Source of the DNA: Bugula neritina | Lineage: Eukaryota > Animalia > Bryozoa | Length of the DNA: 64,000 bases | Direction: 5' to 3' | Assembly (NCBI GenBank): GCA_964035545.1 | Contig: OZ037771.1 | Span: forward strand, 3,297,628-3,361,627 | Shown: in pieces, positions 19,137 through 37,725 of the stretch | Layout: every line of letters begins with the position of its first letter | Position numbering within the stretch: the first letter of the stretch is position 1 | Translations under genes and position numbers: made by a program | The notes under the pieces: model-generated | The model's database searches: none | Seen by the model: only the letters and a program-made list of their open reading frames with translations | Told to the model about the DNA's origin: nothing

Positions 19137-22013
19137 TACCTACCTAACTGCTACCACTAGCTTTGAACCTTAGCTTAGCTTGTTCACTGCCTGATGCATT
19201 TATGAGTCACTTTCAGTAATTTACTAAAAAGCCTCGAACTTTCAATTAAATATAACTAATAACTATAGTCTATAAGGATATTATAATTATGGTAAATTAA
19301 TAATATTAAATATATTATTTAATAGTACTAGAACTAACACTAAGTAATACTAGAAGTAATATTAATACAGATTACAGATACTAATAGTAATTCACTAATA
19401 GTGATACTATAACTAAGTCTAATAGTAACTGCAATGTCCAAGGACACTTCGACTATGACTGACAGTCACACTCACTTTAAGTGACTGCGATAATTATAAT
19501 CTTACTTTGTTTTATTGATTATAAAATTAAATAACAGTCGAGTTAATTTTACCACTTATCTGTTATCACTATCACGGTGACACTGACTATTACATCCACA
19601 ATCACTGCTTCACCGAAACTATCACTATCAGTATTACTATGACTTTACCTGGTCTAGTCTATAACCTAAGCTTATACTCAACTTATAGCTAACAAATAAA
19701 CAAGTTTTATTTAATTTTATAACTATAATACCAAATAATAATATAAAGTTCTACAAGATTACAACTTGGGTACAACTATTATTATAACTATAAGTATAAG
19801 TATAACTATAACTATAAGTATAAGATTAAGTATAAGCCTAAGGCTAAGCATCGGACTAACTTTAAGAGTTAGAGTAAAAGTAAGACTAACAGTAACTGCA
19901 AGACTAACAGTAATACAATTACTCACTAATAGTAATACTAACTCAGTAACTGTAAGATTTATTACAATTAAACAATCAATATTATCATTATGATTATCAT
20001 TATATGATTATAAGATTAGGTGTAATTCTATTTTTTACTTTTTCTTTTAGTTTTAGTTCACAGTTAGACTTGCTTCAAGTTTAAAGTAATGGAGTTAAAA
20101 GTCTCATCTCTAAGAAAAACACAATAAACCTGATTAAATTTCAACAGGCTTTAATTACTATTCTATAGCAGTAGAGTCCAATTCCACCATGATTATTTAA
20201 TAAGCACAACCTTAAACTTTTAAGACTAAGTGAAAGTTTGCAGGAAACTCCCAGCAGCATTCACCGGAAACTTCGAAACCGCAAGTTTGGCAGGTTGCTC
20301 ATCTAGCATTATTTTTATCATGACTGCCAATAATATCAATATTATTAAAATATCAGTAATGCGTCATAAATTTTAAAAATAATTGAAGCATATCAGCAGT
20401 AGCAATGTCATAATTTAAATTACAAATAATTATTTTAAGCGCCCTATCAACTCGTAGAGCAAACGAACACAAAAAGGAGACAACTCTACAAAGATAGCCT
20501 GCTAGTGAGTGATGAACTGATATAGATGTTAAAAAATCAAGCAGCAACACTTGCACTCTCTGTGGTGTGCTCAAAATCACCAGTTAAATAAATTACTTTA
20601 TTCTTATTTAGCACAATGGTCCACTTTCGTAATCATATCTTATTGCAACCGATAATCAATTCATTCAAAGCTGTTGAGCAAATTAAGCTCTATAGTCTCC
20701 AGAGTACTATAGTAGGCCTGCAATGTTGCTGTAGCCAAAAGTATAGAACTTACCTGCTACATTATTATACCTGAATGCAGTTTCTTTTAAGCCATCAGAA
20801 AAAAATTACCAGTGCCACAGCTATTTGAGACTAGTTGATACATATTATTTATTCCAATTATAAGATATATTCCCAATAAAAGTAAGGAATCAGCCTGAAG
20901 CAACTCACAATCCTGCTGCCATAGACACTTGTTATTCATCACTAAAACACCTAAACCTTTGCACAATGGCACAGCGACAGGTGCAAGGATGTAACTCTTG
21001 TGAGTTTTAAGTGGTCATTTATATGATGCCTTAAGGAAAGTGTGGGCTGGTTCACAGTTGTAAAACAGGCTCTCAATATAATATTCTTCAGGAAGTAATT
21101 ACTGTTGATCATATGCAACCAAAAGTGCACTAGAATTTAGAGTATTATACCAACACTACATCATTATTCCAGTAGGCTATGCTATCACCTAAGTTGTAGC
21201 ACATTGCCAGGTCATAATGTAGGCTTGTATTGCAGTTGACAATGACACATTACAGACCATAATAGAAGCTTGAATTACCTACTTTATTACAAATTGGCGT
21301 ATTACAGCATTGCATTTTAACATTCATATAGGCTGCAAGAACTGTGTCAATAAGCCATGGGATGCATAGGATGCATAAGCCATACAATGCAGGTATATCA
21401 TTGCCCCCTCTCTAGTGTCTGTGTTGTCTTATAAATCTCTCAAACCGGAAATGCTGCAACATTCCTTGGCTTTGACATTATGTGAAGAATGGATGCTCTA
21501 AGGGATGAATTTGTGGTAGCCGTTAGCAAGAACTCATGGTTATGGTTTCATTTATGCAACTGTTACCAAACATCAAAAGAAAAATTCAGTTGAAGTTTGG
21601 ATACGAAGTTTCCTTATCAGGTGCTATACCTGCAACCATCATTCAAAACCTCATCTTCTGTTTACAGTGGCATGTATTTTACTGACAGAATATCTCCTCA
21701 ATGCTGCTAACTAAATCACTGCCCCACGCCTCAGATGTTTTACATTTAATAGCTGCTATATTACATTCATGACTTACAAACACAGCAACTGTTGTATCAC
21801 AATATAAAAGCTGTACACGGTATCTCATGTTGGCAAATCTGCCACCTATGTCATTACATAATATACCATAACATTCTTCAAGCTCTGCACTAGCCTGCCC
21901 ATTATATTAAGATTGCCACTTCTGTATCCAGAATCTTGTATTATTTACAATTTACATAGTTAGATTTTGAGAAATATCATGATCAAGTTACTGCATCAAG
22001 TAACTTGCCATTA

Positions 22014-22147
22014 GGTGCAGTAATGGGGAAATTGAGATAGCCAAAGTTCTTTAATTGGTTTGGGTGAGGTTGGAGATTTTCACGAGAAAACAACTTTTAT
22101 TTCTAATCTAGAATACAGGCTTTTCTCAATTTCTCCATTACTGCATG
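22014..22147. mobile_element. MITE with ~30-bp TIRs and flanking TA
   Basis: ggtgcagtaatggggaaattgagatagcc ... ggcttttctcaatttctccattactgcatg, with TA on both sides. Confidence 0.85.
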
Positions 22148-22199
22148 TACCTCAAAGCTGAAAACACAGCCGGCAAGGTAATTTGAGTTTGAATTGAGC

Positions 22200-22649
22200 T
22201 CAATTCGAGTAGTGATACTTGACAACGCACACTCCATTTACGCACTGACTGTAATGATTTTGAGCAAACATGATTACCCTCTTGAATTCTCGATCACTTG
22301 CAAGACTAAAGTAAATTTTATACAAGACAAAATCGTGTTCATTTAGTTTCCTACAATCAATGAAATCACGGTGTTGAGATCTTGTACATGTGAATTCACC
22401 ATCCGGCAACTGGCGATAGTTCCATTTGAATGTTCCCAAGTTCTTGTAACTTCCATTACCATCCGACTTAACGTCATCCAGTGAGTATTTAGATAGATCA
22501 ACAAAGAATGTGCAGCTGTGTTGAACTTTGTATGGTAGTTGGGGAGAAAACTGAAGAGATTTGGAAGTTATGAGCTTTAGCAGGGCTGTGTTATGTAAGC
22601 TCACATTAGCCCTAAAATCCAAAGAACTATCTATAGTTATCAGGCTAGT
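22200..22649 (-). CDS. Variable terminal exon 13: beta-rich domain of uncertain family (FFVDLSKYSLDDVKSDGNGSY...FKRVI)
   Basis: Acceptor tcacctcctag|ACT at 22649 is phase 0; open to the stop at 22200. Confidence 0.65.
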   Translation of the reverse strand, partial: TSLITIDSSLDFRANVSLHNTALLKLITSKSLQFSPQLPYKVQHSCTFFVDLSKYSLDDVKSDGNGSYKNLGTFKWNYRQLPDGEFTCTRSQHRDFIDCRKLNEHDFVLYKIYFSLASDREFKRVIMFAQNHYSQCVNGVCVVKYHYSN

Positions 22650-23294
22650 CTAGGAGGTGACCAGCAGCTAGTAATCGAATAACTTTCTATTTAAGAAACA
22701 CATGCACGGCTCTTAATAAATAACAACTTTGACTACTGCAAGTTCTCATTATTTCTGCCTAATGAGAGAGTTGTGTTAGAACTTAGAAGCATGCTTTCGT
22801 CTCCTACCAACATTTCAGGCAAAGTTTTATCTTTTTCAAAGTAAAAAGCACTTTGTTTTTAACCAAAGAAAAATGAAACTTGCGTGTTAAGAGAAATTTA
22901 TAGCAACTGCAGCGCAAATATTTTGTATATTTTATTTTTTTATATCGATTGTCATATGATCTTTTGATATATTATCAGAGCTTCACCACTGCAGTTGTTT
23001 TCAGAAATATTTACAAAAAATATTCCATTTACTCCAAACGCACTTTGCCAAGAAATGCTCGTATAATACGAGAATATACTTCTACAATCTAAAATACTCT
23101 TGTCAATATAACAGCATGTGACACACATTTGAAGTATACATTATAAAGTTTTCTGCAATAAAAGTTGGAGCCAATTTTTCTAGATAACGTGTAGAATCGA
23201 TGGTTACCATAAACAAATTAAAATATATTTGAGTGATAATTAGATTGTAGCACCAAAATAACAATAGCAAAACTAAAATTAAAGATGAAAAGAA

Positions 23295-23624
23295 TTAATG
23301 ATTGGAGCTTTCAACGAGTTTGAGAAAATCTGAGCAGAAAGAGTCCATTTCATCTGCGGATTTGGCTGTGAACAAGAAATGGTTTTTAATCTTTTTTGTC
23401 ACATAACCAAATCCTGCCAGAGCCATGCTGGACAGAAAATTTCTAGTTCGTTCAGCTGTATACCGATTGTTAGAATCAGGGGGTGCTGATTTCGCACATA
23501 ATACATTTCTAGCAGTGATTGTTCGGTCAACGTTACGATTGGCTAGAATAATGACCCTGTGAACATACTTTTTGTAAAGTAAAACAAGATCCTCTTTTCG
23601 GAATAGACCAGAATCAAGGACTGC
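23295..23624 (-). CDS. Variable terminal exon 12: winged-helix-like domain, subfamily A
   Basis: Acceptor cattgcag|GCA, phase 0; close paralogue of exon 11. Confidence 0.8.
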   Translation of the reverse strand, partial: AVLDSGLFRKEDLVLLYKKYVHRVIILANRNVDRTITARNVLCAKSAPPDSNNRYTAERTRNFLSSMALAGFGYVTKKIKNHFLFTAKSADEMDSFCSDFLKLVESSNH

Positions 23625-25111
23625 CTGCAATGTACACAACTAAAGAGTTCATATCAAATGGTGTTTCATCTACATATTGTCCTGGTATATTTCAAAGTTA
23701 TGAGCTGATTATGAGCCAATCAAAATTTGAGGAAATTTTAGAGGAATCGGCACAGGATTATTGAGCAATTAAAATTCTATACTCTGAAGACCAAATAAAT
23801 GCATAACCAATGCTCTATAGTCTCAATGCTTTAGATGTAGCCTCAGTTCTGAATTGATATGGTCAAGCGATTACAAGAAATAAAGACTTTTACAAGAGCA
23901 AAAACATGCAACGTAATTTTGATGTCCAAATTATTATAACACTTGAAAACGGCCCCAACTTTTTTGCAGAAAACTTACACATTTCAATATCAACATACCT
24001 GCTACAGTTTTGAAGCGGTATTATTTGAGATGCCAATTGATCTGTTTTCTACAAATACCCCAAACTTGACATTTGAAGAAAGTGATTGCACACTGCGAAG
24101 TCAGTTTTGGTCAGAACTTAATATGAAGTATGTATCTCGTGCCCCCCACCCTCACTTTAGTGCCAGCTTCTTTCTAACAAGTGTGGATATTTCTAGACAG
24201 AATAGGGGGAAATTATTACTATATTCAATACTGACATGCTTTTTTCGAGAACTTGTTCTATGTAAAAAAATTAGGATATATGACCAAGAGTTATACCTAT
24301 ACATTATTTTTAAGCCTGATACTAAATTTTTTGTATCAGAATATATTACGTGTGTTTGTGTGTGTGCTTAAAAATCTTGTGATTTAAAATTTTTTTAAAC
24401 CAGCTGTTCTTGCTCACAAAATTGAAATTCATCAAACCGGCTATACATTTTTCTATTATTTGTAACCTTGTTTTTATTGAAAACTGTTTGGGTAGGATTT
24501 AGGAAAAACTGGTGCAATTGAAAGTCAAGCATAGTTTTGCATGTATGTATTGCTCCTGTTCAACACGATCAATCTTAAATTAGTTGTATTCGGCTCAATA
24601 GATTGCATATATTACAGGCGCAAGGAGCAGAAAAGGAGACAAGCATAGCACTTGCTATTAATAGAGGCAACAGGGTTGGGAAAATATTGTTGTTGTCTAA
24701 CAGTAAAATTTTACAAATACTTGCTAGATATGAAGGGCAACTCTGTTAGGAGGTAGGATGATGGTTATTGTGAGGTATGTGCAAGTTCTTCTCATTAGGT
24801 TGTAAAATCATTACAGATACTTCTAATATAAGAACTTTCCAGCTCATGCTGAAGCTAATGTTATAGCTATCAAGTAAACTAATGTGAATGGATGAATCTT
24901 TAGTGGGAAGACTAAGATATGTTTATATGACCGAATACTGTTTCATACTTTCATAAACTACATAAAATATACATAACATGTATGTAAAATGTTAAAAAAT
25001 GTTGGAAGCATTTTAGCATAAAAAATTGTATCATTTAATATTTACAGGTCTGTTTTTAGGAACACAATTCTCACCAGAAATCATAGGTCTATCAGATGCG
25101 CAAGTATGAAC

Positions 25112-25447
25112 CTAATGTCTAGATAATTGAGCAAACTTCAGCAGTTCCAAGCAGAATGGGTCCATTTCTTCTGCTGATTTAGCAGTAAATGAAAAATAGT
25201 TCCTCTTCTTCAGTTTTTGAGTAACAGAACCAAATCCTGCCTGTGCCATGCAGGACAAAAAATCTCGAGTTCGTTCAGCTGTGAGTCTTTTACTATCATC
25301 TGGGGGTGCAGACTTAGCAGAAATTATGTCTCTAACAGAGATTGTTCTGTCAGTTTTACGGCTAGCTAATAGGATGACTTTTGAAACGTACTTTTTGTAG
25401 AGTAAAACAAGATCTTCCTTGCAGAAATTACCAGAATTAGGGTTCGC
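25112..25447 (-). CDS. Variable terminal exon 11: winged-helix-like domain, subfamily A
   Basis: Acceptor cattacag|GCG, phase 0; KEDLVLLYKKYV...TAERTRDFL..MAQAGFG. Confidence 0.8.
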   Translation of the reverse strand, partial: ANPNSGNFCKEDLVLLYKKYVSKVILLASRKTDRTISVRDIISAKSAPPDDSKRLTAERTRDFLSCMAQAGFGSVTQKLKKRNYFSFTAKSAEEMDPFCLELLKFAQLSRH

Positions 25448-25995
25448 CTGTAATGTACACAACTATAAAATTGACAAAAGAGCGCCCACTATAGTAAAAA
25501 GCCGCCATATACTTTGTATCTACTCTGAGGTAGAAAAGTTGTCGAATGCTGTTTGGAAAATATTAGGTTGCAGATATTGTATAAATTACTATTTTCTGTA
25601 GTAGTGGATGCAAAACTAAAGTACTTCAGGAATAAACAGACTGCAGAGATATATGTATATAAACAAAAAGTGTGCATTTTTGAACACTTGCAAAAGATGA
25701 TCCCTGAAGCTTTAATTTACATTATAAGACAACTTGATTTTGTAATTAAAACACTCAGGAAATTAAATTATGTTTTGTAGACAAAGTAACAGTTTTAATA
25801 GACGACTTATGCAGAGATTATGTTTTATAGAAAATATAGCTCAAAAATAAATATGTCACAAATAATAATTTTAGTTATCTTATTGTATTACATTATTGCG
25901 AAGTCAGTTTTGGTCTCGCCTGAAAACCTGATATCTAGAGACAAGCAAAACACTAATTACATGTGAATAGAATAGACCTATAGTTTATTAAACCC

Positions 25996-26382
25996 TCAAG
26001 AATAAAACGGGTAGGTCTGCGCAGCTAGTGCTTCGAGCTTCGTCTTTTGGCAGTCTGTTAGGCCATACTGGGTTAATTTAGGAGTTAAATAGTAGCTCTG
26101 CATGTATTCGGAATGAGCTACACTATAAATATTTAGCTGCTCAGCCGTTGCTGTAGGATTCTTAACAAACCCAACTTGTTCATTGTAGTCTCCTAAACCA
26201 TTCAATTTCAACTCATTGAACACTTGTAATACAGTAGATATATCTGGTCTTCTACCCCAACAGTATGACATCCGAATTTGACGACATGATACAAACTTTC
26301 CAGGAGACTTGAGTACTTTTTTGATGATACTGTTTCGGTTACATCTTTTACTTTTGGCAGCTTCTTCTAAATATGAATTTAC
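25996..26382 (-). CDS. Variable terminal exon 10: winged-helix-like domain, subfamily C
   Basis: Acceptor gtttttag|GTA, phase 0; IIKKVLKSPGKFVSCRQ...LKLNGLG...FVKNP. Confidence 0.75.
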   Translation of the reverse strand, partial: VNSYLEEAAKSKRCNRNSIIKKVLKSPGKFVSCRQIRMSYCWGRRPDISTVLQVFNELKLNGLGDYNEQVGFVKNPTATAEQLNIYSVAHSEYMQSYYLTPKLTQYGLTDCQKTKLEALAAQTYPFYS

Positions 26383-26506
26383 CTAAAAACCCACAACAGC
26401 AGTGAAATGCTTATGAAAGAAAACCCATAACCTGCAATATTCTCATCAAACAAGATGGAAATAAATCTTGCTTTTAAGGAAATCTACAAAGACTATTCAC
26501 CAAAAC

Positions 26507-26872
26507 CTATATTGCGCTACTTTTCCAATCGTCAAAAGTTGCTAAGCCATATAACTTCTGGTAAGTTTCTTGTTGATCTCTGCGAACACGGTCACTTGAA
26601 GAGCCGCCACAGGCAGATGCTGCATTCAATGTTTTTTTATAGGACTCTGGCTTTATGTCATATACCCCTAACATTTCACTAGTCAAATTAGGATTTTTAT
26701 AAAACACATTCCCAACGATGTGGCCATAACCTAAACTGGCTAACTTCTGCATAGAATAATAAATATTTTCCACAAACTCAGGTGTTCTCTGCTTGTAGCA
26801 TTGTGTAAATTCCAATTGCCTCTTACACACTGTGTTTCCTTTCAAACACAAGATCTTTCTCTCAAGAGATTT
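26507..26872 (-). CDS. Variable terminal exon 9: winged-helix-like domain, subfamily C
   Basis: Acceptor ttctgtag|AAA, phase 0; RKILCLKG...MQKLASLGYG...FYKNP. Confidence 0.78.
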   Translation of the reverse strand, partial: KSLERKILCLKGNTVCKRQLEFTQCYKQRTPEFVENIYYSMQKLASLGYGHIVGNVFYKNPNLTSEMLGVYDIKPESYKKTLNAASACGGSSSDRVRRDQQETYQKLYGLATFDDWKSSAI

Positions 26873-27130
26873 CTACAGAACAATTGATGGCTACACAGCT
26901 ACCAAACTTTTATATGAACTTCTTTACATCAACAATAGACTTAATATTCAATAAGTCAAAGGATAAGGTTGGTCTTTATAGACAGGAAGTAGATGTACTT
27001 TAGTTTACAAACACACAGCAACAAAAAACTTTATTACACATATCTGATAATGAATAAAGCTGAGAACGAAATCAGATTACAATTGTAGCATAACATGAAC
27101 ATATAAGCATGTGTTTATCTGCCACGTGGC

Positions 27131-27469
27131 TTAGAACAAAGAGTCATGAAGGTCATTCAGTTCTTTAAGTTTATCACTAGTCACTTGGTGATTTCCTTTA
27201 GTGGATGCCAGTTTCTGGGTGTATTCATAACGAGAAATTCCATAAAATTCAAGCTGTTGATCACTTAACCTTGGATTTTTAAAAAATCGTCCTTTTATTA
27301 GATAGCCATATCCAGTTTGCGAAAGGGCTTTCATAGCACGCTCAATTCTCAACCCAAGAGCTTTTTCATGGTTTTTCCGATTAATACAGTATCTAACTTG
27401 TGTTATGTTAACAACTTTTCCGTGGGCACATAGAATCCGTTGCACCAATAACTGCTGGCTAAGACTTTC
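27131..27469 (-). CDS. Variable terminal exon 8: winged-helix-like domain, subfamily C
   Basis: Acceptor atttttag|GAA, phase 0; ESLSQQLLVQRILC...; paralogue of exon 7. Confidence 0.8.
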   Translation of the reverse strand, partial: ESLSQQLLVQRILCAHGKVVNITQVRYCINRKNHEKALGLRIERAMKALSQTGYGYLIKGRFFKNPRLSDQQLEFYGISRYEYTQKLASTKGNHQVTSDKLKELNDLHDSLF

Positions 27470-27653
27470 CTAAAAATCCACAACAACATGCAGAAGAATA
27501 TGCCAGTTTAGCAAAAAATTTGGTCTCTATAGACAGGTGATTAGAATTTAGAAGACCAAAGTTAAAAATATTTTTTGACATAATTAAAAACCATTAAAAC
27601 CCTCAATTGCTTATTTTATGTACATTTTTGTAAAAGTATTTTCAACTAAATTG

Positions 27654-27992
27654 CTAAAACAATGTTTGGTGAATTTCCTCTAATTTTTTCAGCTGCTCTC
27701 CACTTATTCTGTAGTTGCCTTTGTTGGAAAAGAGTCTTCGGCTATATTCATCCCGTGAGATTCCATACATCTTCAATTGTTTGTCTGTTAATCGGGGATT
27801 TTTGAAAAACCTTCCTTTAATGAAGTAGCCGAACCCAGTATCAGCGAGTGTCTTCATAGTTGATTCAATTCGAAGTCCAAGGCCTTTTTCGTGGTTTTTG
27901 GAGCTGATACAATAGCGCACTTGAGTGATGTTGACAGCTTTCCCATGAGAACACAATATTCGTTGAACTAGTAATTGTTGACTTAGGCTTTC
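27654..27992 (-). CDS. Variable terminal exon 7: winged-helix-like domain, subfamily C
   Basis: Acceptor ctttgtag|GAA, phase 0; ESLSQQLLVQRILC...MKTLADTGFG...FFKNP. Confidence 0.8.
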   Translation of the reverse strand, partial: ESLSQQLLVQRILCSHGKAVNITQVRYCISSKNHEKGLGLRIESTMKTLADTGFGYFIKGRFFKNPRLTDKQLKMYGISRDEYSRRLFSNKGNYRISGEQLKKLEEIHQTLF

Positions 27993-28343
27993 CTACAAAG
28001 TGACACACTCAACTTTACATAGGCCTATAATTTACAGTATGGTCTTTATAGACAGTGTATAGCTATATTTGTATATTGAAAAACAGACTCCTTTTGCTCA
28101 ATTTTACATGGAAGTGTGAATATTTTATTTATTTCAGTGTTAGGCCAGTAGTATTTTCATAACCTATTGACGAAAATGGAAAACTAAGAACTTCATGATA
28201 TAAACTATATTGATGATTGAAAAATAAAATTTATTGTACATACGAGTTACATCATATGAACTCAAATTTATACATAAAATACATACCACTACACGCTGAT
28301 ACAATGAAATATGATTTACATTACCAAATTAGAAAATTTGAAC

Positions 28344-28718
28344 TTATATTTGGGCTGATTCACACCATGCCGATTCTGGTATTCCTAATACCAACAAAGT
28401 ACTCTTACAAAATGAATTGAGGGTATTCCACTTGTTTCTATAAAATGACACTTTTTTAGTTCTACCCTTTGCAACTCTACCAAACCCAATACTTGCAACT
28501 CTATACAAAAAGTTCTTCGCATTAGTTGCAGTGTACACTTTTTTTCCCAGTTCATTACGATCAAATGGACAATAGTGTAACTGCTGAATTCTAGTATGGG
28601 TTATCGCAATAACCGTATCGTCCATTGTAAGCAACCGTTTGATTTGGTATGCGAAATCTTTAACAAAATCTGCATCACTCATTGACAATATTTCTGATTC
28701 TTGTTGGATATTCAGTCT
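28344..28718 (-). CDS. Variable terminal exon 6: winged-helix-like domain, subfamily B
   Basis: Acceptor tgttccag|AGA, phase 0; YQIKRLLTMDD..ITHTRIQQ...ASIGFG; paralogue of exon 5. Confidence 0.8.
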   Translation of the reverse strand, partial: RLNIQQESEILSMSDADFVKDFAYQIKRLLTMDDTVIAITHTRIQQLHYCPFDRNELGKKVYTATNAKNFLYRVASIGFGRVAKGRTKKVSFYRNKWNTLNSFCKSTLLVLGIPESAWCESAQI

Positions 28719-29199
28719 CTGGAACAAAGTGCAAAAATTAAGACGTACAGAGCTGACACAGCACTGGACATGTGAAATTTTCATTGTAAGTCAGTTTCTT
28801 TGATTGTGAAATTTTAAACTTAATGACCAGTGCTTAAATTATGGCACCAAGTTACAAATAGTATTTTAAAAATGAGTTTAAGTCATTATATCAAGTGGAA
28901 TAAATATGAATAGCATGATTTCAACCAGCAAATAAATAATTATTGGGTCTTTATAGACGGTGTATACATTACAACTAAGTGTTAATCAGGAAACCCGCGT
29001 TCTATGAATAATTCACTAGAATTTAAATTGATCAACTGTATGTAATCAAAACTTATTATAATTGAAGACAGACTCGAGAATAGTGATTGAGAAATTTTAT
29101 TATGCGACCATATTAGTTTTGTGAAATATATACATATCTTAAAATTACAGCCATTAAATTCTATACAATAGGTTATTAACCAAAATTTCAAGGAAGAAT

Positions 29200-29574
29200 T
29201 TACGACAAAGCAGAAACCATCCACATAGACTCAGAAATTGCTAATGCTGCCAGAGTGTTTCTACAGAATGAGTTTAGATTTAACCACTTATTTCTATAAA
29301 ATGTTACTCTTTTTGTCTCACTCATGGAAACTGTGCCAAACCCAATACTAGCAATTCTACATAAAAAGCTTTTGGCTAAGGTAGCTGTAAAAACTTTCTT
29401 CCCTTTTTCGTTCCGTTCAAACGGACAAAAGCGAAATTGCTGAATTCTAGTGTGAGTTATCGCTGAGACAGTGTCATCCATTGTCAACAATCGCTTGATT
29501 TGATAGGCATAGCTTTTAACAAAGTCAGTATCACTCATTGACATTATTCCAGGTGGCTGATGGATTTTTACTTT
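29200..29574 (-). CDS. Variable terminal exon 5: winged-helix-like domain, subfamily B
   Basis: Acceptor ttttttag|AAA, phase 0. Confidence 0.8.
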   Translation of the reverse strand, partial: KVKIHQPPGIMSMSDTDFVKSYAYQIKRLLTMDDTVSAITHTRIQQFRFCPFERNEKGKKVFTATLAKSFLCRIASIGFGTVSMSETKRVTFYRNKWLNLNSFCRNTLAALAISESMWMVSALS

Positions 29575-29741
29575 CTAAAAAAACGAAATTATCTTTACAG
29601 ATTGAGAATAGAAGCCAAGAATCACATGTATCACATAAAAATATATTGACCCGAGACCATTAAATAAAAATTCAAACAAAGTTATGATGTACAAAATAGT
29701 GGTACCTAAGAAAATTCAAGAGCTGTAATACCATAACACTA

Positions 29742-30532
29742 CTAGGTGACCATATGCACATCTGGCATACCAGATTTTTCTTGTTCTAGACGACGAACAC
29801 GTTTCCAAAAGTATTCAAGCCAGCCTAAAATTATATTAAACACTAAAAGCAGTTGGTCTTTATTGCAGCAGACATGATATTATCTTGGAAATTTAGAACC
29901 ATATTATTATATTGTAAACATTACAGCCATGTCTGACCAAACTCACCATTTGAAGCTTTAAAAGTGTGATAGCCCAACTGTTGTGCGACTTCTTTTGCTT
30001 TAGTTTGAATTCCAACTCCTGTTGGAGTTTTCCCGGACGCTTTAAATGCCCAGTACCAATCAAGTATAGCAGCATTAATTTCAGCGTATGCATTTGATTT
30101 TAAAAGTCTCTGTTTTTTAGTGATGAAAGGATTGGAAAACCTAAACCATTCAGCCATTATTTTGTGCTTATTCTGGACAATGTTAGTTATTGTAAATTTG
30201 CTTTGACCATACTGTAGGCACAGAGCTTTTATTGATACACCACTGTCGTGAAGCTGGCAGCATTGAAACTTTTGTTCTAATGATAGTACTGTTGAAGATG
30301 GCTTGGTGTATGTATCTTTCATTTTCAGAGATGACATAACTCTTGATTGTTCAAGTGTAGTGGCACTCATAGAATCACCAACTTTAGATTTCAAAGCAAT
30401 GTCCTGATTAGAAGACGAATCAGCTGATTTCATGCCAAACCAATTGATGGAGTTATCTTCATTCATAGTTCTTTCATGATGTAGTAAACCATCGCCATGT
30501 GTGCTCAAAGGTGACTCATGCGAATTAAAGCT
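29742..30532 (-). CDS. Variable cassette 4 (two exons, 30532-29947 and 29824-29742): CENP-B/pogo-type psq HTH + Tc5 HTH DNA-binding domain
   Basis: Phase-0 acceptor cactgtag|AGC; LSLEQK..HDSGVSIKALCLQYGQSKFTITNIVQNK; splicing restores FKASNG|WLEYFWKR; no DDE domain follows. Confidence 0.85.
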
Positions 30533-30683
30533 CTACAGTGAATTAGTATGCCAGGTTGTTTATATAGAACTAATTTCGATATGCCCACTATAGAGGCTGT
30601 TTTGATGCCAAGAAAATAGGGAGGGGTGCTTTGTGATACATGTGATTCACAATAATCTAGTTAACACTGTTTTATAATTTCAC

Positions 30684-30716
30684 CACCTGTCTATAAAGAC
30701 CAAAACTGATTTCGCA
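30684..30716 (-). promoter_or_regulatory. Putative intronic RNA docking site
   Basis: Plus-strand CACCTGTCTATAAAGACCAAAACTGATTTCGCA; partial reverse complements at 29850, 28945, 28040, 27519, 26969, 25897 and 24094. Confidence 0.75.
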
Positions 30717-31132
30717 TTTTATGTTAAATGAAAACATGAAGGTTAGATTGATATTGAAAATTATATGAACTTGACTACCCATAGATTTACAATCGTTTGT
30801 AAATCTATAAGTTAAAAAACAGCTCGTAATTATTTGAAATATACAAGGATAATTCATTGCCATACCATGGCTTTAAAATAAAAATGTAACCAAGTCATAG
30901 ATAGTTCGCATAGTTTATACCACATCCAGCGTCATTTGCAATGTTGTGCCGGACATATAACTACATTTCTTAATAAAAAAAACACGCTACATTTTCAAAG
31001 CGACCGCAGAGTAATTGGCAAATTTATTATTTACAATTTTATTACAAAAAAAGATGTGAAAGTACATTAAAATATTTATTACAAAAATGAGGACTAGAAA
31101 ATCTGAAAAGCCATCCAAAAAGGCAATTGAAA

Positions 31133-31498
31133 TCAAAATACATAACTCTTCTTTTGCTTCCCAATTAAAAGTGGCCATAGCAATTGAAACCACCGAAGAT
31201 GAGATTTACTAGTGAAAGAAGCATCCAGCTCAGATCCACTTTGCGATTTCACTGCTCGGTTTACAATTCGAAGACAGTACTTAAACTTGTTACGTATTCT
31301 GTCCAGGCATTGGTGAGGACTATGTGGATGCTTGAGTAAGAATTCTTTAAGAACAGATTCATATGTTTGAGTAGTTCCAGTATAGTTTACTTCTGTTATA
31401 AGTTTCTTTCGATAAGCCTCATTAGATGTTATGATTGAGACCAAATCATTGACTTCTTCTAGCGACCAAGAAAGCTTTTGACATAGCTCCATATCAAT
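31133..31498 (-). CDS. Variable terminal exon 3: MADF/Myb-SANT-like (trihelix) domain
   Basis: Acceptor aattctag|ATT, phase 0; WSLEEVNDLV...YESV...RIRNKFKY...RWFQLL. Confidence 0.75.
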   Translation of the reverse strand: MDMELCQKLSWSLEEVNDLVSIITSNEAYRKKLITEVNYTGTTQTYESVLKEFLLKHPHSPHQCLDRIRNKFKYCLRIVNRAVKSQSGSELDASFTSKSHLRWFQLLWPLLIGKQKKSYVF

Positions 31499-32485
31499 CT
31501 AGAATTTCATGTAGATGGTTTATAAACGCATATCACCAAGCAACAGATTATGAGCTTACCATACAAAATCTCAGTAAAACAAAAAACATGTTCATTACGA
31601 GTTAGTTAGCTTGAAATACAAATTTGAACAAGTTTGAAAAACCATTATCAAACTCTATGCAACATAGGACAAAAAGCACAGTTGAGTGGACAGACAACTG
31701 CCTAACAGTGAACCTTTTCACAAATATTTTTATATTCAAAAATTTGTGCTTTACTGTTTGACTAAGTTGCAGTCAGCATATACATAGACAATGGATGCAT
31801 AAGCACAGTAATAGCTATAAACAAGTAATATAGTCTGGAAAACATGGCATAGAAAAAGTTTGGAGCACTTTGGCACACATGCTGATACAAATTATAAAAG
31901 TTTCAATTGAAAATTTTACCAAATTCCTAAATTCGATTGACAAGACTATGGCTAAAAATCTACTTACTTTGTGTACCAAATCTTGAGCATATCCCAGCAC
32001 AGTTCTTGAATGGTTAAGCACCATTTCATGGAAGTCCAAGTATTTGTAGACTATGCAGTATATACAGTATAGCTTTGCCATCGCGAAATTCATTTTGGGC
32101 GAAAACGACTAGGGTGTGGTATAAACTATGCTCGTTAAACAGTTGTCTGCCCATTAACAGACTGCTGCCCAGCCTTTGAGCTCTAAGTATTGCCAAAACA
32201 AACTATAGTTAGCATAGTTACTATAGCTGAAAATAGTACTGGCATTCCAATATTCAAAAATACTTTACACAATGGGGGACATTGTCTAGAGCATAGCTCA
32301 GAAGTAATGCCTACACTGCAGAAAATGAAGAGAGAGCAAGCATAAGAAATTGGGTAGTAAGAAATTATTTGTGGTAATATTGTTCTGGTGATCTTAATTT
32401 CTGGTAAACTTGAAGTCAACCATTTAATACTACATTCAGGTTTATTAGGTGAAAAATATGTAAAAAGTTCATTTTATAAAAAAAA

Positions 32486-32794
32486 CTACTGTAAACATCG
32501 AACACAAAACTCATTTAAGTCATCATGTAGACGGAATAAGATTTGTCCTTTTTGACCTTTTCGTATGGTACCGAAACCTGCACCAGTCATGCAGAGTAAA
32601 AACTGTAATGATCTGTTTCTTTTATGTTTCCCTTGACCATCCCGAGGACAGAACTTTCCCACGGTGAGGTCTCTTAGAGTCAATTCTCTACCCATATTTT
32701 CTAAACTTCTTGCTTTGTTCACAATTCGCTTCACGTGGGCTTTATACTTGCCAAATAAATCATCTTTTAGAAAATCTCCAAAATCTTCATTAAC
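32486..32794 (-). CDS. Variable terminal exon 2: winged-helix-like domain, subfamily A
   Basis: Acceptor tttcttag|GTT, phase 0; KDDLFGKYKAHVKRIV...FLLCMTGAGFG. Confidence 0.78.
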   Translation of the reverse strand, partial: VNEDFGDFLKDDLFGKYKAHVKRIVNKARSLENMGRELTLRDLTVGKFCPRDGQGKHKRNRSLQFLLCMTGAGFGTIRKGQKGQILFRLHDDLNEFCVRCLQ

Positions 32795-35036
32795 CTAAGA
32801 AAATGTGCAACTTGAATATAGTCAGAAACATCAATTTCATAATGAAACATGGATAAACTTGACTTCTGGATACAAGCCTACTATTGGTATAACTTAAACG
32901 AATCAGGCGACGTATTAGTTTTATAACTTATAACTTACACTAAACATGCAACAGTACTATTACCATGGCTTACATTGAGAGCAGATTGAATATTCACTAT
33001 CTAATTGCACAACATTATTGAGTCAAGGTAGAGTCATGAAAGCATAAAGATCAACTTCCAATCAATCCAAAATTATATTACTAAAAACTTTTGGCACAAA
33101 CATTTACCATTATTGTACAACAAGCAGGGAACAATAAATCATCTGCCCAATTATTTCACCCAGAACAAATTCAAATGTTGACTTTTCATAACAAAAACAT
33201 TCTTTTCATATGCTAATTAATTGACTGATGGATGATAAATTTTACTGTATCAATTAAAATTTACAATGTTTCTAGGTTAAATCAAAATCACTCTACAATT
33301 GATATTACAACAACTACACCACTTTAAAACTGCCTTTGGAAATTGCATTGCAAAGAGTTGCCAACACAAGGAAAGCATGTCACCATCTGAAATAGACTTT
33401 TATCACAGTGAAATATTAAAGGGTATATGCCCCCCCCCCCCCCCCCCCGTAAAATTGCTGACAGTTTGAAGAAAGCTATCAGTGGTCTCAACTTTCTATT
33501 TATTAATAAAAATTGAGATTCCTACATGGATTAGAGTATTGACTTGACGCTCAACAACTTTGCATTGTTCTCGAGGAAAGGTTAGCAAGTTTTCGCCAAC
33601 AGCTAGAGTAATTGTTGGGCACCAGAACGTATTACATGAGAAGCAATAATACATTGCATAGAGGAACACAACTCCTTAGGCAAGCAGGCAGTTTCACAAA
33701 TTCATCCGAATTGAACAAACATTTTCAGTTATAGACTTTAAAGCTGCTGATAAGATGCATATAGTAAGTGCCTATCTACCCTATCTAATACATAAGTTGC
33801 CCATCCTATTCCAAGTGACAGATTCTTACAGAAGCCATCAATTACAATATTTAAAGTAATTTAATATAATGTATACACACAGCTGTACATAAACAAATAG
33901 ACCCACACAAATAAAACCACAACTAATCAACAGTGTAATCATACATACAGCCATTACCATTCATATTTTCCTTACCTGATCCAACAGCAGCCACCAGCTT
34001 TGAGTATTCCAAGTTTTTCCACCAGTTATCACATTTCCTCAATATTTTTTGCAGTCAACCCACGGTTTCACTAGCAACTAGTGTTTATTAGCAGCAACAA
34101 CTTCAGTGTTTCCAAATATGTCACAGACTCTGCTTGAGATCATTTACTTTGAAATGTTCATATTGCAGGTACAAATAATAACACTATTGAAATACACAAG
34201 TAAAAATAGCATCTTGTAAATTGATGAGTAATATGAAAAAACATCCACTAGCAATAAGACGAAAAGCCACAAAACCTTAGGGGAACTTCACTACTACTAC
34301 TAACAGAAATCTCAATCTTATCACAAACATAAAAAAATGCTATATAAAAATCATGAATAAGAATTTGTCCACTCTTTAATACACTGAGCAGTAGTTCATC
34401 CCCACAGCAGTTAGCAGGTGAACGTATAAGAAGTTGAGACCACCGATTTCCTATGTTATGCTGTCTAGGTTACTTGAGTGTTAAGTGAAGGCAGTTATAT
34501 TGCCCACGCAGTGAAGAAGATGGCATTTAGAGACAGTTTAGATGCAGTATGAGGAGACATTGCACAGTGAAAACGCGAGAGTATATCCTGGGTAACACCG
34601 AAGTGGTACTCTATGAATATTGGAATGCCAACACAGCATTTTCACACTAACAGTGAAGTGGCCAGCAGCACTGGTGGTAGAAGAACTAGAAAGTCAAAGC
34701 ACTTTCTCATTTTTTAATTGAGAAAACTTCCTCAATTTGAAGAAGTGAAAATGAGTTTCTAGTACTTTTAACCACAAACTGCAGAAATCACACTGACTTG
34801 CTAGAGATGATGAGCTACGAATATGTATATTATATATTTTTAGAGCGAACAATCAAAACAAATAAATATATTAAATTTGATTTCAGGTTTCAATGGAAAA
34901 ATATTAAAAATCTGTGAGTCGGTATAAGTTTATACAATGTTTTGATTGGCGGTCATTAAATTATCAACTTCATATTACAAATCATGATATAAAAACCAGT
35001 CTGCCTGATTGACGACATAAGTGGCTAGCTAAGCGG

Positions 35037-35330
35037 TTACCCTATATCCTTCGAGTTAGTGAGTGTTTTTATGGTAGGTTTTGACCATACTCGGGTGGAC
35101 ACGATGGTAACACCGTGCTGACGCTTCAAGTGATTTATCATGTTACTTGTATTACCACCAGTGGACTTAATAACTTGTCTACAAGCTCTACAGACTGTAA
35201 AATCTCTGGAATTCTCCACAGACCCTTCTGCCAAAGTTTCAAAATATTTCCAAACCTCACTTCTAAAAGGGCGCGGAACTGTTTTATGCAGCTGAGTTGC
35301 TGGATTGGTGAGGTTACAAGAGTTCCGACT
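35037..35330 (-). CDS. Variable terminal exon 1: BED zinc finger
   Basis: Acceptor cttttcag|AGT, phase 0; RSEVWKYF...CRAC..VIKSTGGNTSNMINHLKRQH. Confidence 0.88.
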   Translation of the reverse strand, partial: SRNSCNLTNPATQLHKTVPRPFRSEVWKYFETLAEGSVENSRDFTVCRACRQVIKSTGGNTSNMINHLKRQHGVTIVSTRVWSKPTIKTLTNSKDIG

Positions 35331-35671
35331 CTGAAAAGACCAGATTCACGCGTCAACGAGCTGAGAAAGCAAATTCTCTTCACATCGGCTCATAACCTTC
35401 CTTGCAGGACTAAACACAGAACTCGTGCTTCCACATTGGTCGGGTATGCAAATTAACCTTCATTTGAGTAGCGAAAAGAAACACCACAAGTTTTTGTTGT
35501 CTTTTTTTTAGAAAAAAGGGGAATAAGGAATCTGAGGCCTCTCGAAGTCAGTGTGATTTGATAAGCATTGCAATGTGTAGCAACTTGAACCTTCAGAAAA
35601 TGCTCAGCCAGTTGGTGAACGTTCAAATTGTCACACGTTCCAATTTAAGAAAGAATGACATAAACACAAAC

Positions 35672-37725
35672 CTTTTGGCTAGACTGGCTAGGAGTAGGTT
35701 GAGAGTGGAACTGTGGACGATATATATGCTGATTGGGAGTCATACTGGGATAAGTCGACGAGATTGGCCCTGTGGGTATCTTTATTCCTGACAGCGGGCC
35801 CATAACAAAGTCTGGCCGTGACGGTGTTTCCTTTTTATACATGTGCTGCGGTGTGGAGGTGGTGGGAAGCGGGTTGATTGATTGTGAGGGTGTCATGGTT
35901 TGACTGTTGAATATGTTCATCATGGAGTCGATACTGGGGTCAGAGGGAGGAAAAACTACATCTACAAATGAAAGCATAAAAAGTGTATCAATTGTATGCA
36001 GCTTGGCTAAGGTTTACGATGAGCAAAGGTGTTAGCAATCATACATTAAAGAAACAGTAACATCAAAAGCTGTTGGGGAGCATCGTAAATAATTCTAAGA
36101 ATTAGAAAAACCTGGCGAAAGCAATGGAAGACCTACTAACCGGGCAATACATTCATATCCAGTTCTTTGTTGCGACTTGCACCATCTTGTTCCCCGACTT
36201 CCACCTTGATCTCTAGAATATCTGGGTCAAACTCGAATGGCTGTTGTTCAGTTGGGTCGTCCGAAGGTCGTTGTTCTGATTCCGAGTCTCGTTCCGTCTC
36301 AGGTTCATCCTACAGCAGAATGTAAGAGAAATACAGAAATTGGACGTTGTTTGGTTGTATGCAGTACCGACAGCCACATGAAGAAGTAAAGTGCTTGCGG
36401 TAACTCACCTTATTGGGTACATCTTCAAAGTCGAGTCCAGAGGGAGTTTCCGAGTCCTTATCAACAACAGGGGGGATATCAATGTAGCCCGGGCTGGCCA
36501 TCTCAGAGTCAAACTCCAAGCTAGCCGGCTCCATCGACACTATGTTAGAGTCCGCAGGATTGGTCTAATAAACAGGAAGTAAAAGAAGACTAACCAGACA
36601 TGTCTTACTAGACTCTAGAAAGAAAGACATGATGAAATGGCAAAGTTAAAAAATAGAACACAGCAGATAGAAATATTTATGATATCACATCATATGACTC
36701 ATGGTAATTATTTTTTGAAAACCAACTTTTGTTTCAACAGATTACTAGTCGAAAACTAAAGTAATGAGAGTCAAGGGTTTTAATTTAGTGCTAAACATGT
36801 CTGAAACAACAACATACAGCAGTCGATGTCATTATACAAAGGCGATGTGCTTACAGTGAGTGTAGGCATGCTGGAGGTAGCCACAGGTGTGGAAGTATTG
36901 TTTGATGAGGCTTGACTAGATGTTGGATTGCTGAGAGAAAAACCCGCCTTTAAGGGGGGCGGCACAGGAGGCGCCGAGAGTAGCACAGCCGACTGTGAGT
37001 CTGGATCTGAATCTACAAAGGAAAGACATGTATTTAAATCTGATAGGCTTTAAACTCCAAGAAAATGTTCACCTGGGAACACATACAGGTTAGCAGATAA
37101 TGGTGAGCACTTGACAGTACCTTCATTACGTGGGTGAGTGGTGCTAGAAACCCGTTTCGGTGCATTGACTTTACGCTTCTTGGTGTGAGATCTGAAATCT
37201 TGAGACATTATGCAGATGTGTTTGTGGTGCTCCATCTCGTGTGAGTAGAAGGCTTTATACTGACACTTATCACACTCAAAGTACCAGCTGAGTTTCTGAA
37301 TATAGCCGTCATGTGGCAGAGTCATGTCAGTGTGTTTGTGTCCATTAGGGTGCATCGACTCGACTATCTGTTGAAGAATATGACGCAGGGCTATCGAGAG
37401 GTTATGCTCTCCTGCAGTGTGCTACAAAAGAGGTAAAATGACAGTCGAAGAAAGGTATGTAGAGGCATGCTGATTAGATGAACTATAATTTCATTTCATT
37501 TCTACCAGAAACGTAAGCAAAACACATGTAATTATTACTACAATAACTTGTACTAGTTTTAAATACAGATGTGTGGGCTTGCATAAAACTAACAGAGAAC
37601 ATTATCGCATTGTTTTCATATTCAATAAAAAAAAATACATGAATTCTATCAAGTAACCAGAAGCTACTATAAAATATCACACCAGTTTTTATAGACATAC
37701 AAAAGGAAAAACTTACCACAACCAT
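35672..37725 (-). CDS. Common N-terminal exons (361 aa) of a putative multi-isoform transcription factor
   Basis: Exons 37725-37717, 37421-37121, 37012-36855, 36564-36409, 36309-36141 and 35961-35672 join in frame. They encode one zinc-finger-like motif (FECDKCQY..HHKHIC), a KKRK NLS-like motif, an IKVE SUMO consensus and an S/P/acidic disordered region, and end at the phase-0 donor AAG|GTTTGT. Confidence 0.8.

Follow-up and report, generated by a model that had tools for sequence, protein, structure and literature searches.

Control of exon choice by docking and selector sequences is known mainly from arthropod genes (Dscam1, 14-3-3xi, Mhc, srp, PGRP-LC, Pip), along with a few mammalian ones. 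In Drosophila mod(mdg4) and lola, a constant N-terminus is shared by proteins whose DNA-binding C-termini come from many alternative exons. Among the closest described systems to the one considered here are PGRP-LC, CG42235, and Pip of Drosophila, where competing RNA pairings in the 3' variable region have been proven by mutation and switch on the 3' splice site close to them (Pan et al. 2018, PMC6191721). The locus compared with them below lies in a 64,000-nt stretch of DNA from the bryozoan Bugula neritina (contig OZ037771.1, positions 3,297,628 to 3,361,627; "the window"). A first-pass annotation had proposed a single docking site there, with seven competing selectors choosing the terminal exon in the manner of Dscam1. 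Judged from its sequence, the element probably belongs to a docking/selector system, in which long-range RNA duplexes compete within the pre-mRNA, although the list of selectors and the role assigned to pairing both need amendment.

The gene is on the minus strand, as are all features given below, and its pre-mRNA includes the docking element at 30682-30716. It is transcription-factor-like, with ~13 alternative last exons (cassettes, numbered c1 to c13) that swap a DNA-binding-type tail; a stop codon ends every cassette ORF. The last constant exon has its 3' end at 35672-35701, with a common donor AAG/GTTTGT at 35672/35671. This donor is joined to five cassette acceptors in assembled contigs from presumed RNA sequencing runs of two studies (X5 and X11, plus X2 for c4). 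A loose end of the constant exon, 23-28 nt long and mapping uniquely to 35674-35701, is identical at acceptors 30534, 28720, 27994, 26384, and 25449. These are tandem 3' cassettes sharing one 5' splice site, an arrangement of the type described in PMC6191721. An ADAR gene adjoins the locus.

The distal cassette array spans 22200-30532, as delimited by ORFs, splice joints, loose ends, and acceptor sequences. Its first unit has an acceptor at 30532 (c4a) and is spliced from c4a to 4b (29823-29706) and then to c5. The remaining acceptors are at 29574 (c5), 28718 (c6), 27992 (c7), 27469 (c8), 26872 (c9), 26382 (c10), 25447 (c11), about 23624 (c12), and about 22649 (c13, putative). The domains encoded are a BED finger (c1), Myb/SANT-like and CENP-B/Tc5 HTH domains, and nine copies of an unnamed domain in what are here called the GFG cassettes. 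An exhaustive profile search found 34 relatives. Pfam gave no match for the nine GFG cassettes or the constant exons, each exon being searched singly, and a Foldseek search of the cassette domain against the PDB returned nothing significant (best E = 0.11), with all of the weak matches being winged-helix proteins. The domain is winged-helix-like, without a Pfam family.

The docking site, here called D1, had been placed at 30684-30716. It is real, and maps to 30682-30716 on the transcribed strand, in an intron and 150-184 nt upstream of the c4 acceptor. It is the sole copy in the gene and in the genome, and the single such element between donor and array, but does not directly follow the constant exon: it sits behind three proximal cassettes (c1-c3), 5 kb from the donor. 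Six of the seven claimed selectors hold up, with predicted D1 duplexes of 13-23 bp and -27 to -42 kcal/mol. Type-A selectors pair with the 3' half of D1, occupying 30682-30704. They precede c6 (28945-28962; 13 bp perfect at 28946-28958 plus an extension, -26.7 kcal/mol, 227 nt upstream of the acceptor), c7 (28040-28055; 16 bp perfect, -32.0 kcal/mol, 48 nt upstream), c8 (27519-27541; 23 bp with two G-U pairs, -42.0 kcal/mol, 50 nt upstream), and c9 (26969-26986; 18 bp perfect, -33.0 kcal/mol, 97 nt upstream). Type-B selectors pair with the 5' half, at 30696-30716, and precede c11 (25897-25917; 6 bp, an A.C mismatch, and 14 bp, -31.2 kcal/mol, 450 nt upstream) and c12 (24094-24112; 6 bp, an A.C mismatch, and 12 bp, -28.2 kcal/mol, about 470 nt upstream). 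The acceptor distances of these last two (450-470 nt) exceed those of all the others. The c6 selector is the weakest of the six, its -26.7 kcal/mol barely past the minimum of -24.8 kcal/mol found in opposite-strand controls within the window. The original account is right about the A.C mismatches in the exon 11 and 12 selectors and about the G-U pair at 27527. It is also right that only one pairing can form at a time: because all D1 selectors overlap on a UGGUC core, with both types and all six duplexes using 30698-30702, a given pre-mRNA has room for a single D1 duplex. No significant local fold was predicted for the D1 region itself (z = +0.92), and strain SNPs are found in its flanks, with none inside.

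The seventh claimed selector, a bulged copy at 29850-29874 assigned to exon 5, has to be withdrawn. It contains only an 11-bp match (29853-29863), at -21.2 kcal/mol, which is within background; by the RNA contigs it lies inside the internal intron of the c4 unit (29824-29945); and no above-background selector was found at the corresponding place in other species. The partner in front of c5 is instead 29619-29635, which is complementary to a second docking island, D2 (30632-30648, core UCACAUGUAUCAC), the two making up a perfect inverted repeat of 17 bp. Their pairing would loop out exons c4a and c4b. Six variable exons (c6, c7, c8, c9, c11, and c12) have a selector for D1 and c5 has one for D2; c4 is the default neighbor of D1. 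No selector for c10 or c13 was found in the window, in agreement with the first-pass annotation; an orthologue of c10 in another species has one (locus L002, 4628-4657).

Raw RNAduplex energies over 45-nt windows discriminate poorly, with background reaching -28 kcal/mol and unrelated sites at 34770 and 36545 scoring -32 kcal/mol, and contiguous-pair counts, shorter windows, and opposite-strand controls were adopted in their place. A genome-wide motif count, one of the checks originally suggested, shows the motif to be specific to the locus. A 17-mer version, allowing at most one mismatch, has four copies of one orientation and a single copy of the opposite orientation at the locus; elsewhere in the 216-Mb genome there is one unrelated hit, a copy with one mismatch on contig C2. 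A 19-mer version is confined to this locus. These counts rule out a dispersed repeat. A known structured RNA family was also ruled out, as no Rfam family reached its gathering score in 21500-37500.

Because D1 lies behind three proximal cassettes, the model requires relay stems between it and the donor, and three candidates were found, arranged in series. The first has arms at 35545-35559 and 34785-34799 (15 bp, perfect) and would loop out c1, the BED finger; the second, at 34614-34630 and 32240-32256 (17 bp, perfect), would loop out c2; and the third, at 32112-32131 and 30908-30927 (20 nt at 95%), would loop out c3, ending 192 nt upstream of D1. It is their position and exactness that suggest a relay function. 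The 14.1-kb gene has six exact inverted repeats of at least 15 nt, against 0.40 expected (maximum two in 100 shuffles), and all six are elements of the docking/selector model.

The proposal that terminal exons are chosen by Dscam-like pairing is supported. Orientation, position, conservation, compensatory changes, and RNA contigs all argue for the docking/selector logic. A last-exon array with one donor is already mutually exclusive, and so pairing more likely activates distal cassettes than enforces exclusivity (the argument is that of PMC6191721). As we infer it, a duplex would loop out the intervening cassettes with their acceptors and poly(A) signals, putting the chosen acceptor near D1, and the stems around c1-c3 would leave a few hundred nt between donor and D1 in place of about 5 kb. 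Distal cassettes might thereby hold their own against proximal ones, despite the latter being transcribed earlier.

The pairings could conceivably be real but serve some other purpose: masking of poly(A) sites in skipped cassettes, trans-splicing (as in mod(mdg4), lola, and sDscam), or formation of dsRNA for editing. Neither c7 nor c9 has a canonical poly(A) signal ahead of the next acceptor, and contigs run on past c7 to c8 and past c9 to c10; cases are known in which RNA pairing assists trans-splicing (PMC9258826); and there is the neighboring ADAR gene. Uses of this kind are nevertheless unlikely. The selectors adjoin acceptors, not poly(A) signals; with every cassette downstream of the donor and on its strand, cis-splicing suffices; and among the differences listed there is no clustered A>G at the duplexes.

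The docking/selector reading can also be examined in other species. D1 is a near-invariant island of 28 nt in about five of them, in an intron that is otherwise unalignable. Orthologous selectors are found upstream of cassettes in loci L001, L002/L003, L008, L014/L016, and L013, mostly at distances of about 20-130 nt, with a few to about 250 nt; for the c7 orthologues in L001 and L003 the distance is 49-58 nt. Over eight loci, the gene strand has 28 sites scoring -28 kcal/mol or lower, and the opposite strand has none. Selectors tend to prefer their own docking site to a foreign one: 18 of 26 do so when selectors are chosen with the shared core (one-sided Wilcoxon p = 0.014). Picking them by their own docking site biases the test (p = 1.7e-5), and the shared-core choice lowers the signal to the value given.

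Covariation in orthologous loci, another check suggested at the outset, is present as compensatory changes in both the D1 pairings and the D2 stem. In D1, a C:G pair in the window (GCGAAAUCAG with CUGAcUUCGC) is replaced by U:A in species B and C (GUGAGAUCAG with CUGAU(U)UCAC). At the position just 5' of UCAG, species B and C have an A:U pair and species D has G:C, where the window has the A.C mismatch. The signal for D1 itself is modest, since most of D1 is invariant. The D2 core of 13 nt is likewise invariant in five species, and its flanks co-vary with the partner: across the five, position +1 is A:U or U:A; position +2 is C:G, G:C, or A:U; and positions -1/-2 are A:U or G:C. Orthologous D2 stems are at 2441-2456/3412-3427 in L001, 2169-2187/3453-3471 in L003, about 1644/2801 in L008, and about 1010/3052 in L014. 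Docking sequences and complementarity are both conserved, with compensatory change.

These comparisons bear on the possibility that the elements are relics of tandem duplication without present function, the selectors having been copied along with their exons and the docking site having arisen by one inverted duplication. The cassettes are paralogues, paralogous cassettes share a selector type (c7 and c8 type A, c11 and c12 type B), and selector pairs are linked by direct repeats. However, the intron around the selectors is unalignable even between c7 and c8, bearing out the original remark that the motifs are kept amid dissimilar sequence; the dissimilar cassettes c6 and c9 are also preceded by type-A selectors; D1 and its selectors have been kept in about five species, although the rest of their introns cannot be aligned; and there are compensatory changes, with constraint of the kind seen arguing against relics. 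Relics are thus a very unlikely explanation. The smallest probability of all goes to a DNA or RNA site bound by a protein (a splicing factor, for instance, or a product of the gene itself), with pairing incidental: the gene does encode DNA-binding-type domains and the core GUCUUUAUAGAC is partly palindromic, but orientation is strict, with one docking copy against many inverted ones (28:0), types A and B match different halves of D1 and share no one motif, the G-U tolerance at 27527 makes sense only as RNA, and the compensatory changes link distant partners.

A docking/selector system at this locus would extend a known mechanism, Dscam-style exon choice, to a gene and an animal phylum new to it. 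A literature search, incomplete in its coverage, found nothing joining docking/selector control with lophotrochozoans or bryozoans. A clear, conserved bryozoan case would show that this solution recurs wherever tandem exon arrays expand, and would relate DNA-binding specificity, as chosen in a lineage-specific family of winged-helix-like factors, to RNA structure. It would also offer a natural system for studying how long-range pairing beats proximal last exons, one that is compact at about 14 kb, has short duplexes, and can be compared across several species. There is perhaps an even chance that a multi-tier RNA architecture arose independently in bryozoans, in which three stems in series each excise a proximal cassette, D1 and D2 lie side by side as docking islands, and either half of D1 has its own selectors, all making up a ~13-way switch of DNA-binding domains. 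Such an architecture would be the first docking/selector system described in Lophotrochozoa, and the first governing the choice of transcription-factor DNA-binding modules.

In overall design the gene resembles mod(mdg4) and lola, in having a constant region and many terminal exons that each supply a different DNA-binding module. It differs in that a scan of four constant-exon ORFs turned up no BTB domain; in that its cassettes are BED, Myb-like, CENP-B HTH, and winged-helix-like instead of FLYWCH or C2H2 fingers; and in that all of them are on the minus strand downstream of the donor, where trans-splicing is unneeded. With Dscam1 exon 6 (Graveley 2005, as cited in PMC6191721), it shares a single, highly conserved docking site, selectors complementary to overlapping parts of it, a docking site more conserved than the selectors, and one duplex per pre-mRNA. 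The Dscam1 variants lie internally, as mutually exclusive exons flanked by two constant ones, and their docking site comes directly after the constant exon, whereas the bryozoan cassettes are last exons and D1 follows c1-c3. The extra stems recall the balancer and long-range pairings and the "locus control region" of Dscam1, which counter the "first come, first served" advantage of proximal exons (PMC8791459 and PMC3535345); unlike those, the bryozoan stems are in series, each enclosing one whole proximal cassette.

There is a close likeness to PGRP-LC, CG42235, and Pip, which also have tandem 3' cassettes on one common 5' splice site, with intronic docking sequences and selectors before the cassettes; the Pip array, with 10 cassettes over >12 kb, is of similar scale (PMC6191721). 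The present gene belongs to another family, in Bryozoa and not Diptera. Its cassettes are single terminal exons swapping a DNA-binding-type domain, and it has two adjacent docking islands, with three stems that would loop out the proximal cassettes between donor and docking site.

The window DNA is eukaryotic and AT-rich, and the gene spans ~37400 to 22200 on the minus strand. RNA contigs at 30534, 28720, 27994, 26384, and 25449, from three runs (two studies and a metagenomic library), share a 23–28-nt loose end with a unique placement at 35674–35701, where the exon whose donor (AAG/GTTTGT) is at 35672 has its 3′ end. Corrected for the shared AG, these give phase 0 acceptors for cassettes c4a (30532), c6 (28718), c7 (27992), c10 (26382), and c11 (25447); a contig break at 27471 is consistent with use of the c8 acceptor. 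A stop codon terminates each cassette ORF, and the array (c1–c13, in transcript order) is therefore a set of alternative terminal cassettes with one donor. One RNA contig has joints from 29946 to 29823 and from 29706 to 29574, delimiting a 118-nt exon, 4b (29706–29823); c4a, exon 4b, and c5 can form a single composite 3′ end. Neither AATAAA nor ATTAAA precedes the next acceptor for c7 or for c9, and unspliced contigs run from c7 through the c8 acceptor and its upstream pairing element (27442–27994) and from the end of c9 through the c10 acceptor (25960–26505), so that c7 and c9 may each have a 3′ end that overlaps with the cassette that follows. The neighboring upstream gene region (~41000–55100, minus strand) contains 30 exact direct repeats of at least 17 nt.

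At the protein level, with exons searched singly and no joined spliced model, c1 encodes a BED finger (E = 1.7e-11), c3 has a weak Myb/SANT-like match, c4 encodes a CENP-B/Tc5 HTH, and nine other cassettes (23298–32794) encode an unnamed domain that contains a G-[FYL]-G motif and has no Pfam match. Its AlphaFold model (mean pLDDT 94.8) is helix-strand-helix-helix-strand-strand with extra C-terminal helices, and its PDB neighbors are weak but all winged-helix proteins; as modeled, the domain is winged-helix-like with additional C-terminal helices. Splicing of c4a through the 118-nt exon to c5, as in the RNA contigs, therefore puts an HTH and then a winged-helix-like domain in one isoform. Searching 1.84 billion representative proteins with a profile built from these nine domains recovered only 34 relatives, which are largely ORF-sized fragments from marine samples.

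At the RNA level, docking site D1 (30682–30716), in the intron ahead of c4a, is complementary in the pre-mRNA to six downstream elements, or selectors, each upstream of a cassette acceptor: those of c8 (27519–27541; 23 bp with 2 G-U, −42.0 kcal/mol, 50 nt upstream), c9 (26969–26986; 18 bp perfect, −33.0 kcal/mol, 97 nt), c7 (28040–28055; 16 bp perfect, −32.0 kcal/mol, 48 nt), c11 (25897–25917; 6 bp, an A.C mismatch, and 14 bp, −31.2 kcal/mol, 450 nt), c12 (24094–24112; 6 bp, an A.C mismatch, and 12 bp, −28.2 kcal/mol, ~470 nt), and c6 (28946–28958; 13 bp perfect plus an extension, −26.7 kcal/mol, 227 nt). The minimum predicted energy for the opposite-strand control in the window is −24.8 kcal/mol. 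The 3′ half of D1 pairs with the type-A selectors (c6–c9) and the 5′ half with type-B (c11 and c12), but all six cover 30698–30702, so that the pairings are mutually exclusive, as the first-pass annotation had proposed from overlap on a docking core. It had counted seven selectors: six stand (−26.7 to −42.0 kcal/mol), while the bulged seventh (29850–29874; 11 bp, −21.2 kcal/mol) is within background. This copy, proposed for c5, also sits inside the internal intron 29824–29945, and its proposed bulged part has several differences in a second strain. On these three grounds it fails as a selector. For c10 and c13, which the annotation had left without selectors, none was found in the window. Nor is the motif the common dispersed repeat it had raised as an alternative: 17-mer and 19-mer versions are limited to this locus in 216 Mb, bar one 1-mismatch match elsewhere. 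Local folding of the D1 region is not significant (z = +0.92), which should leave it available for long-range pairing; the locus has no Rfam family match. An unspliced contig from another strain (sequencing run X1) has six substitutions relative to the window, at 30650, 30657, 30665, 30666, 30669, and 30730, and a 7-nt insertion after 30725; none of the differences listed is inside D1.

The interval 22000–36100 contains six exact inverted repeats of 15 nt or more, vs. a mean of 0.40 and at most 2 in dinucleotide shuffles (n = 100). Two are D1-selector pairs. A third joins a second docking island just downstream of D1, D2 (30632–30648), to 29619–29635 (17 bp perfect); this second arm precedes the c5 acceptor by 45 nt, and the stem thereby loops out c4a and c4b. 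The others are three stems that each close around a single proximal cassette: c1 (35545–35559/34785–34799), c2 (34614–34630/32240–32256), and c3 (32112–32131/30908–30927). If all three form, the donor is separated from D1 by roughly 570 nt of unpaired RNA (the summed gaps between stem arms) instead of ~5 kb. Less perfect pairs are also present. A 21-nt pair (23676–23696/30833–30853, 90% complementary) has one arm 52–72 nt upstream of the c12 acceptor and the other ~120 nt upstream of D1, and may give c12 an additional docking/selector pair; another (23261–23281/25866–25886, 21 nt, 86%), whose upstream arm abuts the c11 selector, encloses both c11 and c12 and could act as a relay from the last cassette, c13, to D1. 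A 22-nt, 95% complementary hairpin with an 86-nt loop (22016–22037/22124–22145) lies a short way beyond the last cassette ORF on its downstream side, and the intron between c1 and c2 has a run of ~20 G at ~33430–33455 (minus strand). The docking/selector duplexes could serve other ends, for example poly(A)-site masking or trans-splicing, but this is considered unlikely.

Contigs of the cassette-domain relatives, some of them from marine biofilm metagenomes (PMC6355793), supplied orthologous loci for about five other taxa. Every locus extending far enough upstream has two islands in the intron ahead of the array: UCAGUUUUGGUC[U/C]UUAU[A/G]GACAGGUGGU, with 26 of 28 columns invariant, and, ~30 to 70 nt downstream depending on species, UCACAUGUAUCAC, with 13 of 13 invariant. 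Sequence flanking both is essentially unalignable across species. Selectors for each species' own docking site lie upstream of cassette ORFs, mostly by ~20–130 nt and in a few cases by up to ~250 nt, counted to the ORF start: at 4239, 4763, 6395, and 7125 in contig L001; 4065, 4869, and 4628 in L003/L002, the last preceding the c10 orthologue; 5215, 6030, and 6759 in L008; 2023, 3879, 4532, 5194, 5754, and 6549 in L014; 215, 734, 1394, and 2474 in L016; and 216 in L013. That selectors and docking sites are functionless relics of duplication is very unlikely, since this leaves the cross-species constraint unexplained. With an energy of −28 kcal/mol or lower required, eight loci together yield 28 gene-strand sites (~26 of them independent; L002 and L003 overlap) vs. 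0 on the opposite strand. In species D (L008/L009, 1565–3441) a “WTDAR” winged-helix cassette follows the docking site, with the c5 orthologue next; this contig showed no CENP-B HTH exon, and cassette content and order therefore vary between species.

The D2 stem keeps a 13-nt core, and its flanks change together with the partner. Position +1 is A:U in the window and species C, U:A in B and D, and U.G in E; +2 is unpaired in the window, C:G in B, A:U in C, and G:C in D and E; −1 is A:U in the window and C, G:C in B, and G.U in D and E; and −2 is A:U in the window and D, G.U in B, and G:C in C. The 5′ part of D1 is GCGAAAUCAG in the window, paired with ...UUCGC, and GUGAGAUCAG in species B and C, paired with ...U(U)UCAC, which replaces C:G by U:A. 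The base on the 5′ side of UCAG is in an A:U pair in B and C, a G:C pair in D, and the A.C mismatch in the window. With selectors picked by shared core only, avoiding circular selection, 18 of 26 bind their own docking site better than a foreign one (p = 0.014), a modest signal because most of D1 is invariant. A repeated protein-binding site, also a very unlikely reading, leaves three things unexplained: an orientation bias of 28:0, selectors that match different halves of D1, and these compensatory changes.

Taken together, complementarity, uniqueness, orientation, position, conservation, partial covariation, and the arrangement of one donor and many cassettes make it quite probable that the locus is a genuine docking/selector system. 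Duplex formation would loop out the skipped cassettes and activate the acceptor that follows the bound selector, with the three proximal stems working as a relay; c4 would be the default choice while D1 and D2 are free, and the c9 selector, which precedes the c10 acceptor by 587 nt, could conceivably serve c10 as well. One donor permits one last exon anyway, and the likely role of pairing is therefore in competition between distal and proximal cassettes, probably enabling the former to compete with the latter, which are transcribed earlier. The finding is of solid interest for studies of RNA structure in splicing. Literature searches, incomplete in coverage, found nothing joining docking/selector terms with bryozoans or other lophotrochozoans. 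This role of pairing in cassette competition was argued and tested for Drosophila 3′ variable regions (Pan et al., PMC6191721), and the docking/selector mechanism is already known, 3′ cassette arrays included; new here are the phylum, the gene, with its swap of DNA-binding-type modules from a family without Pfam models, and the joint presence of two docking islands and serial loop-out stems.
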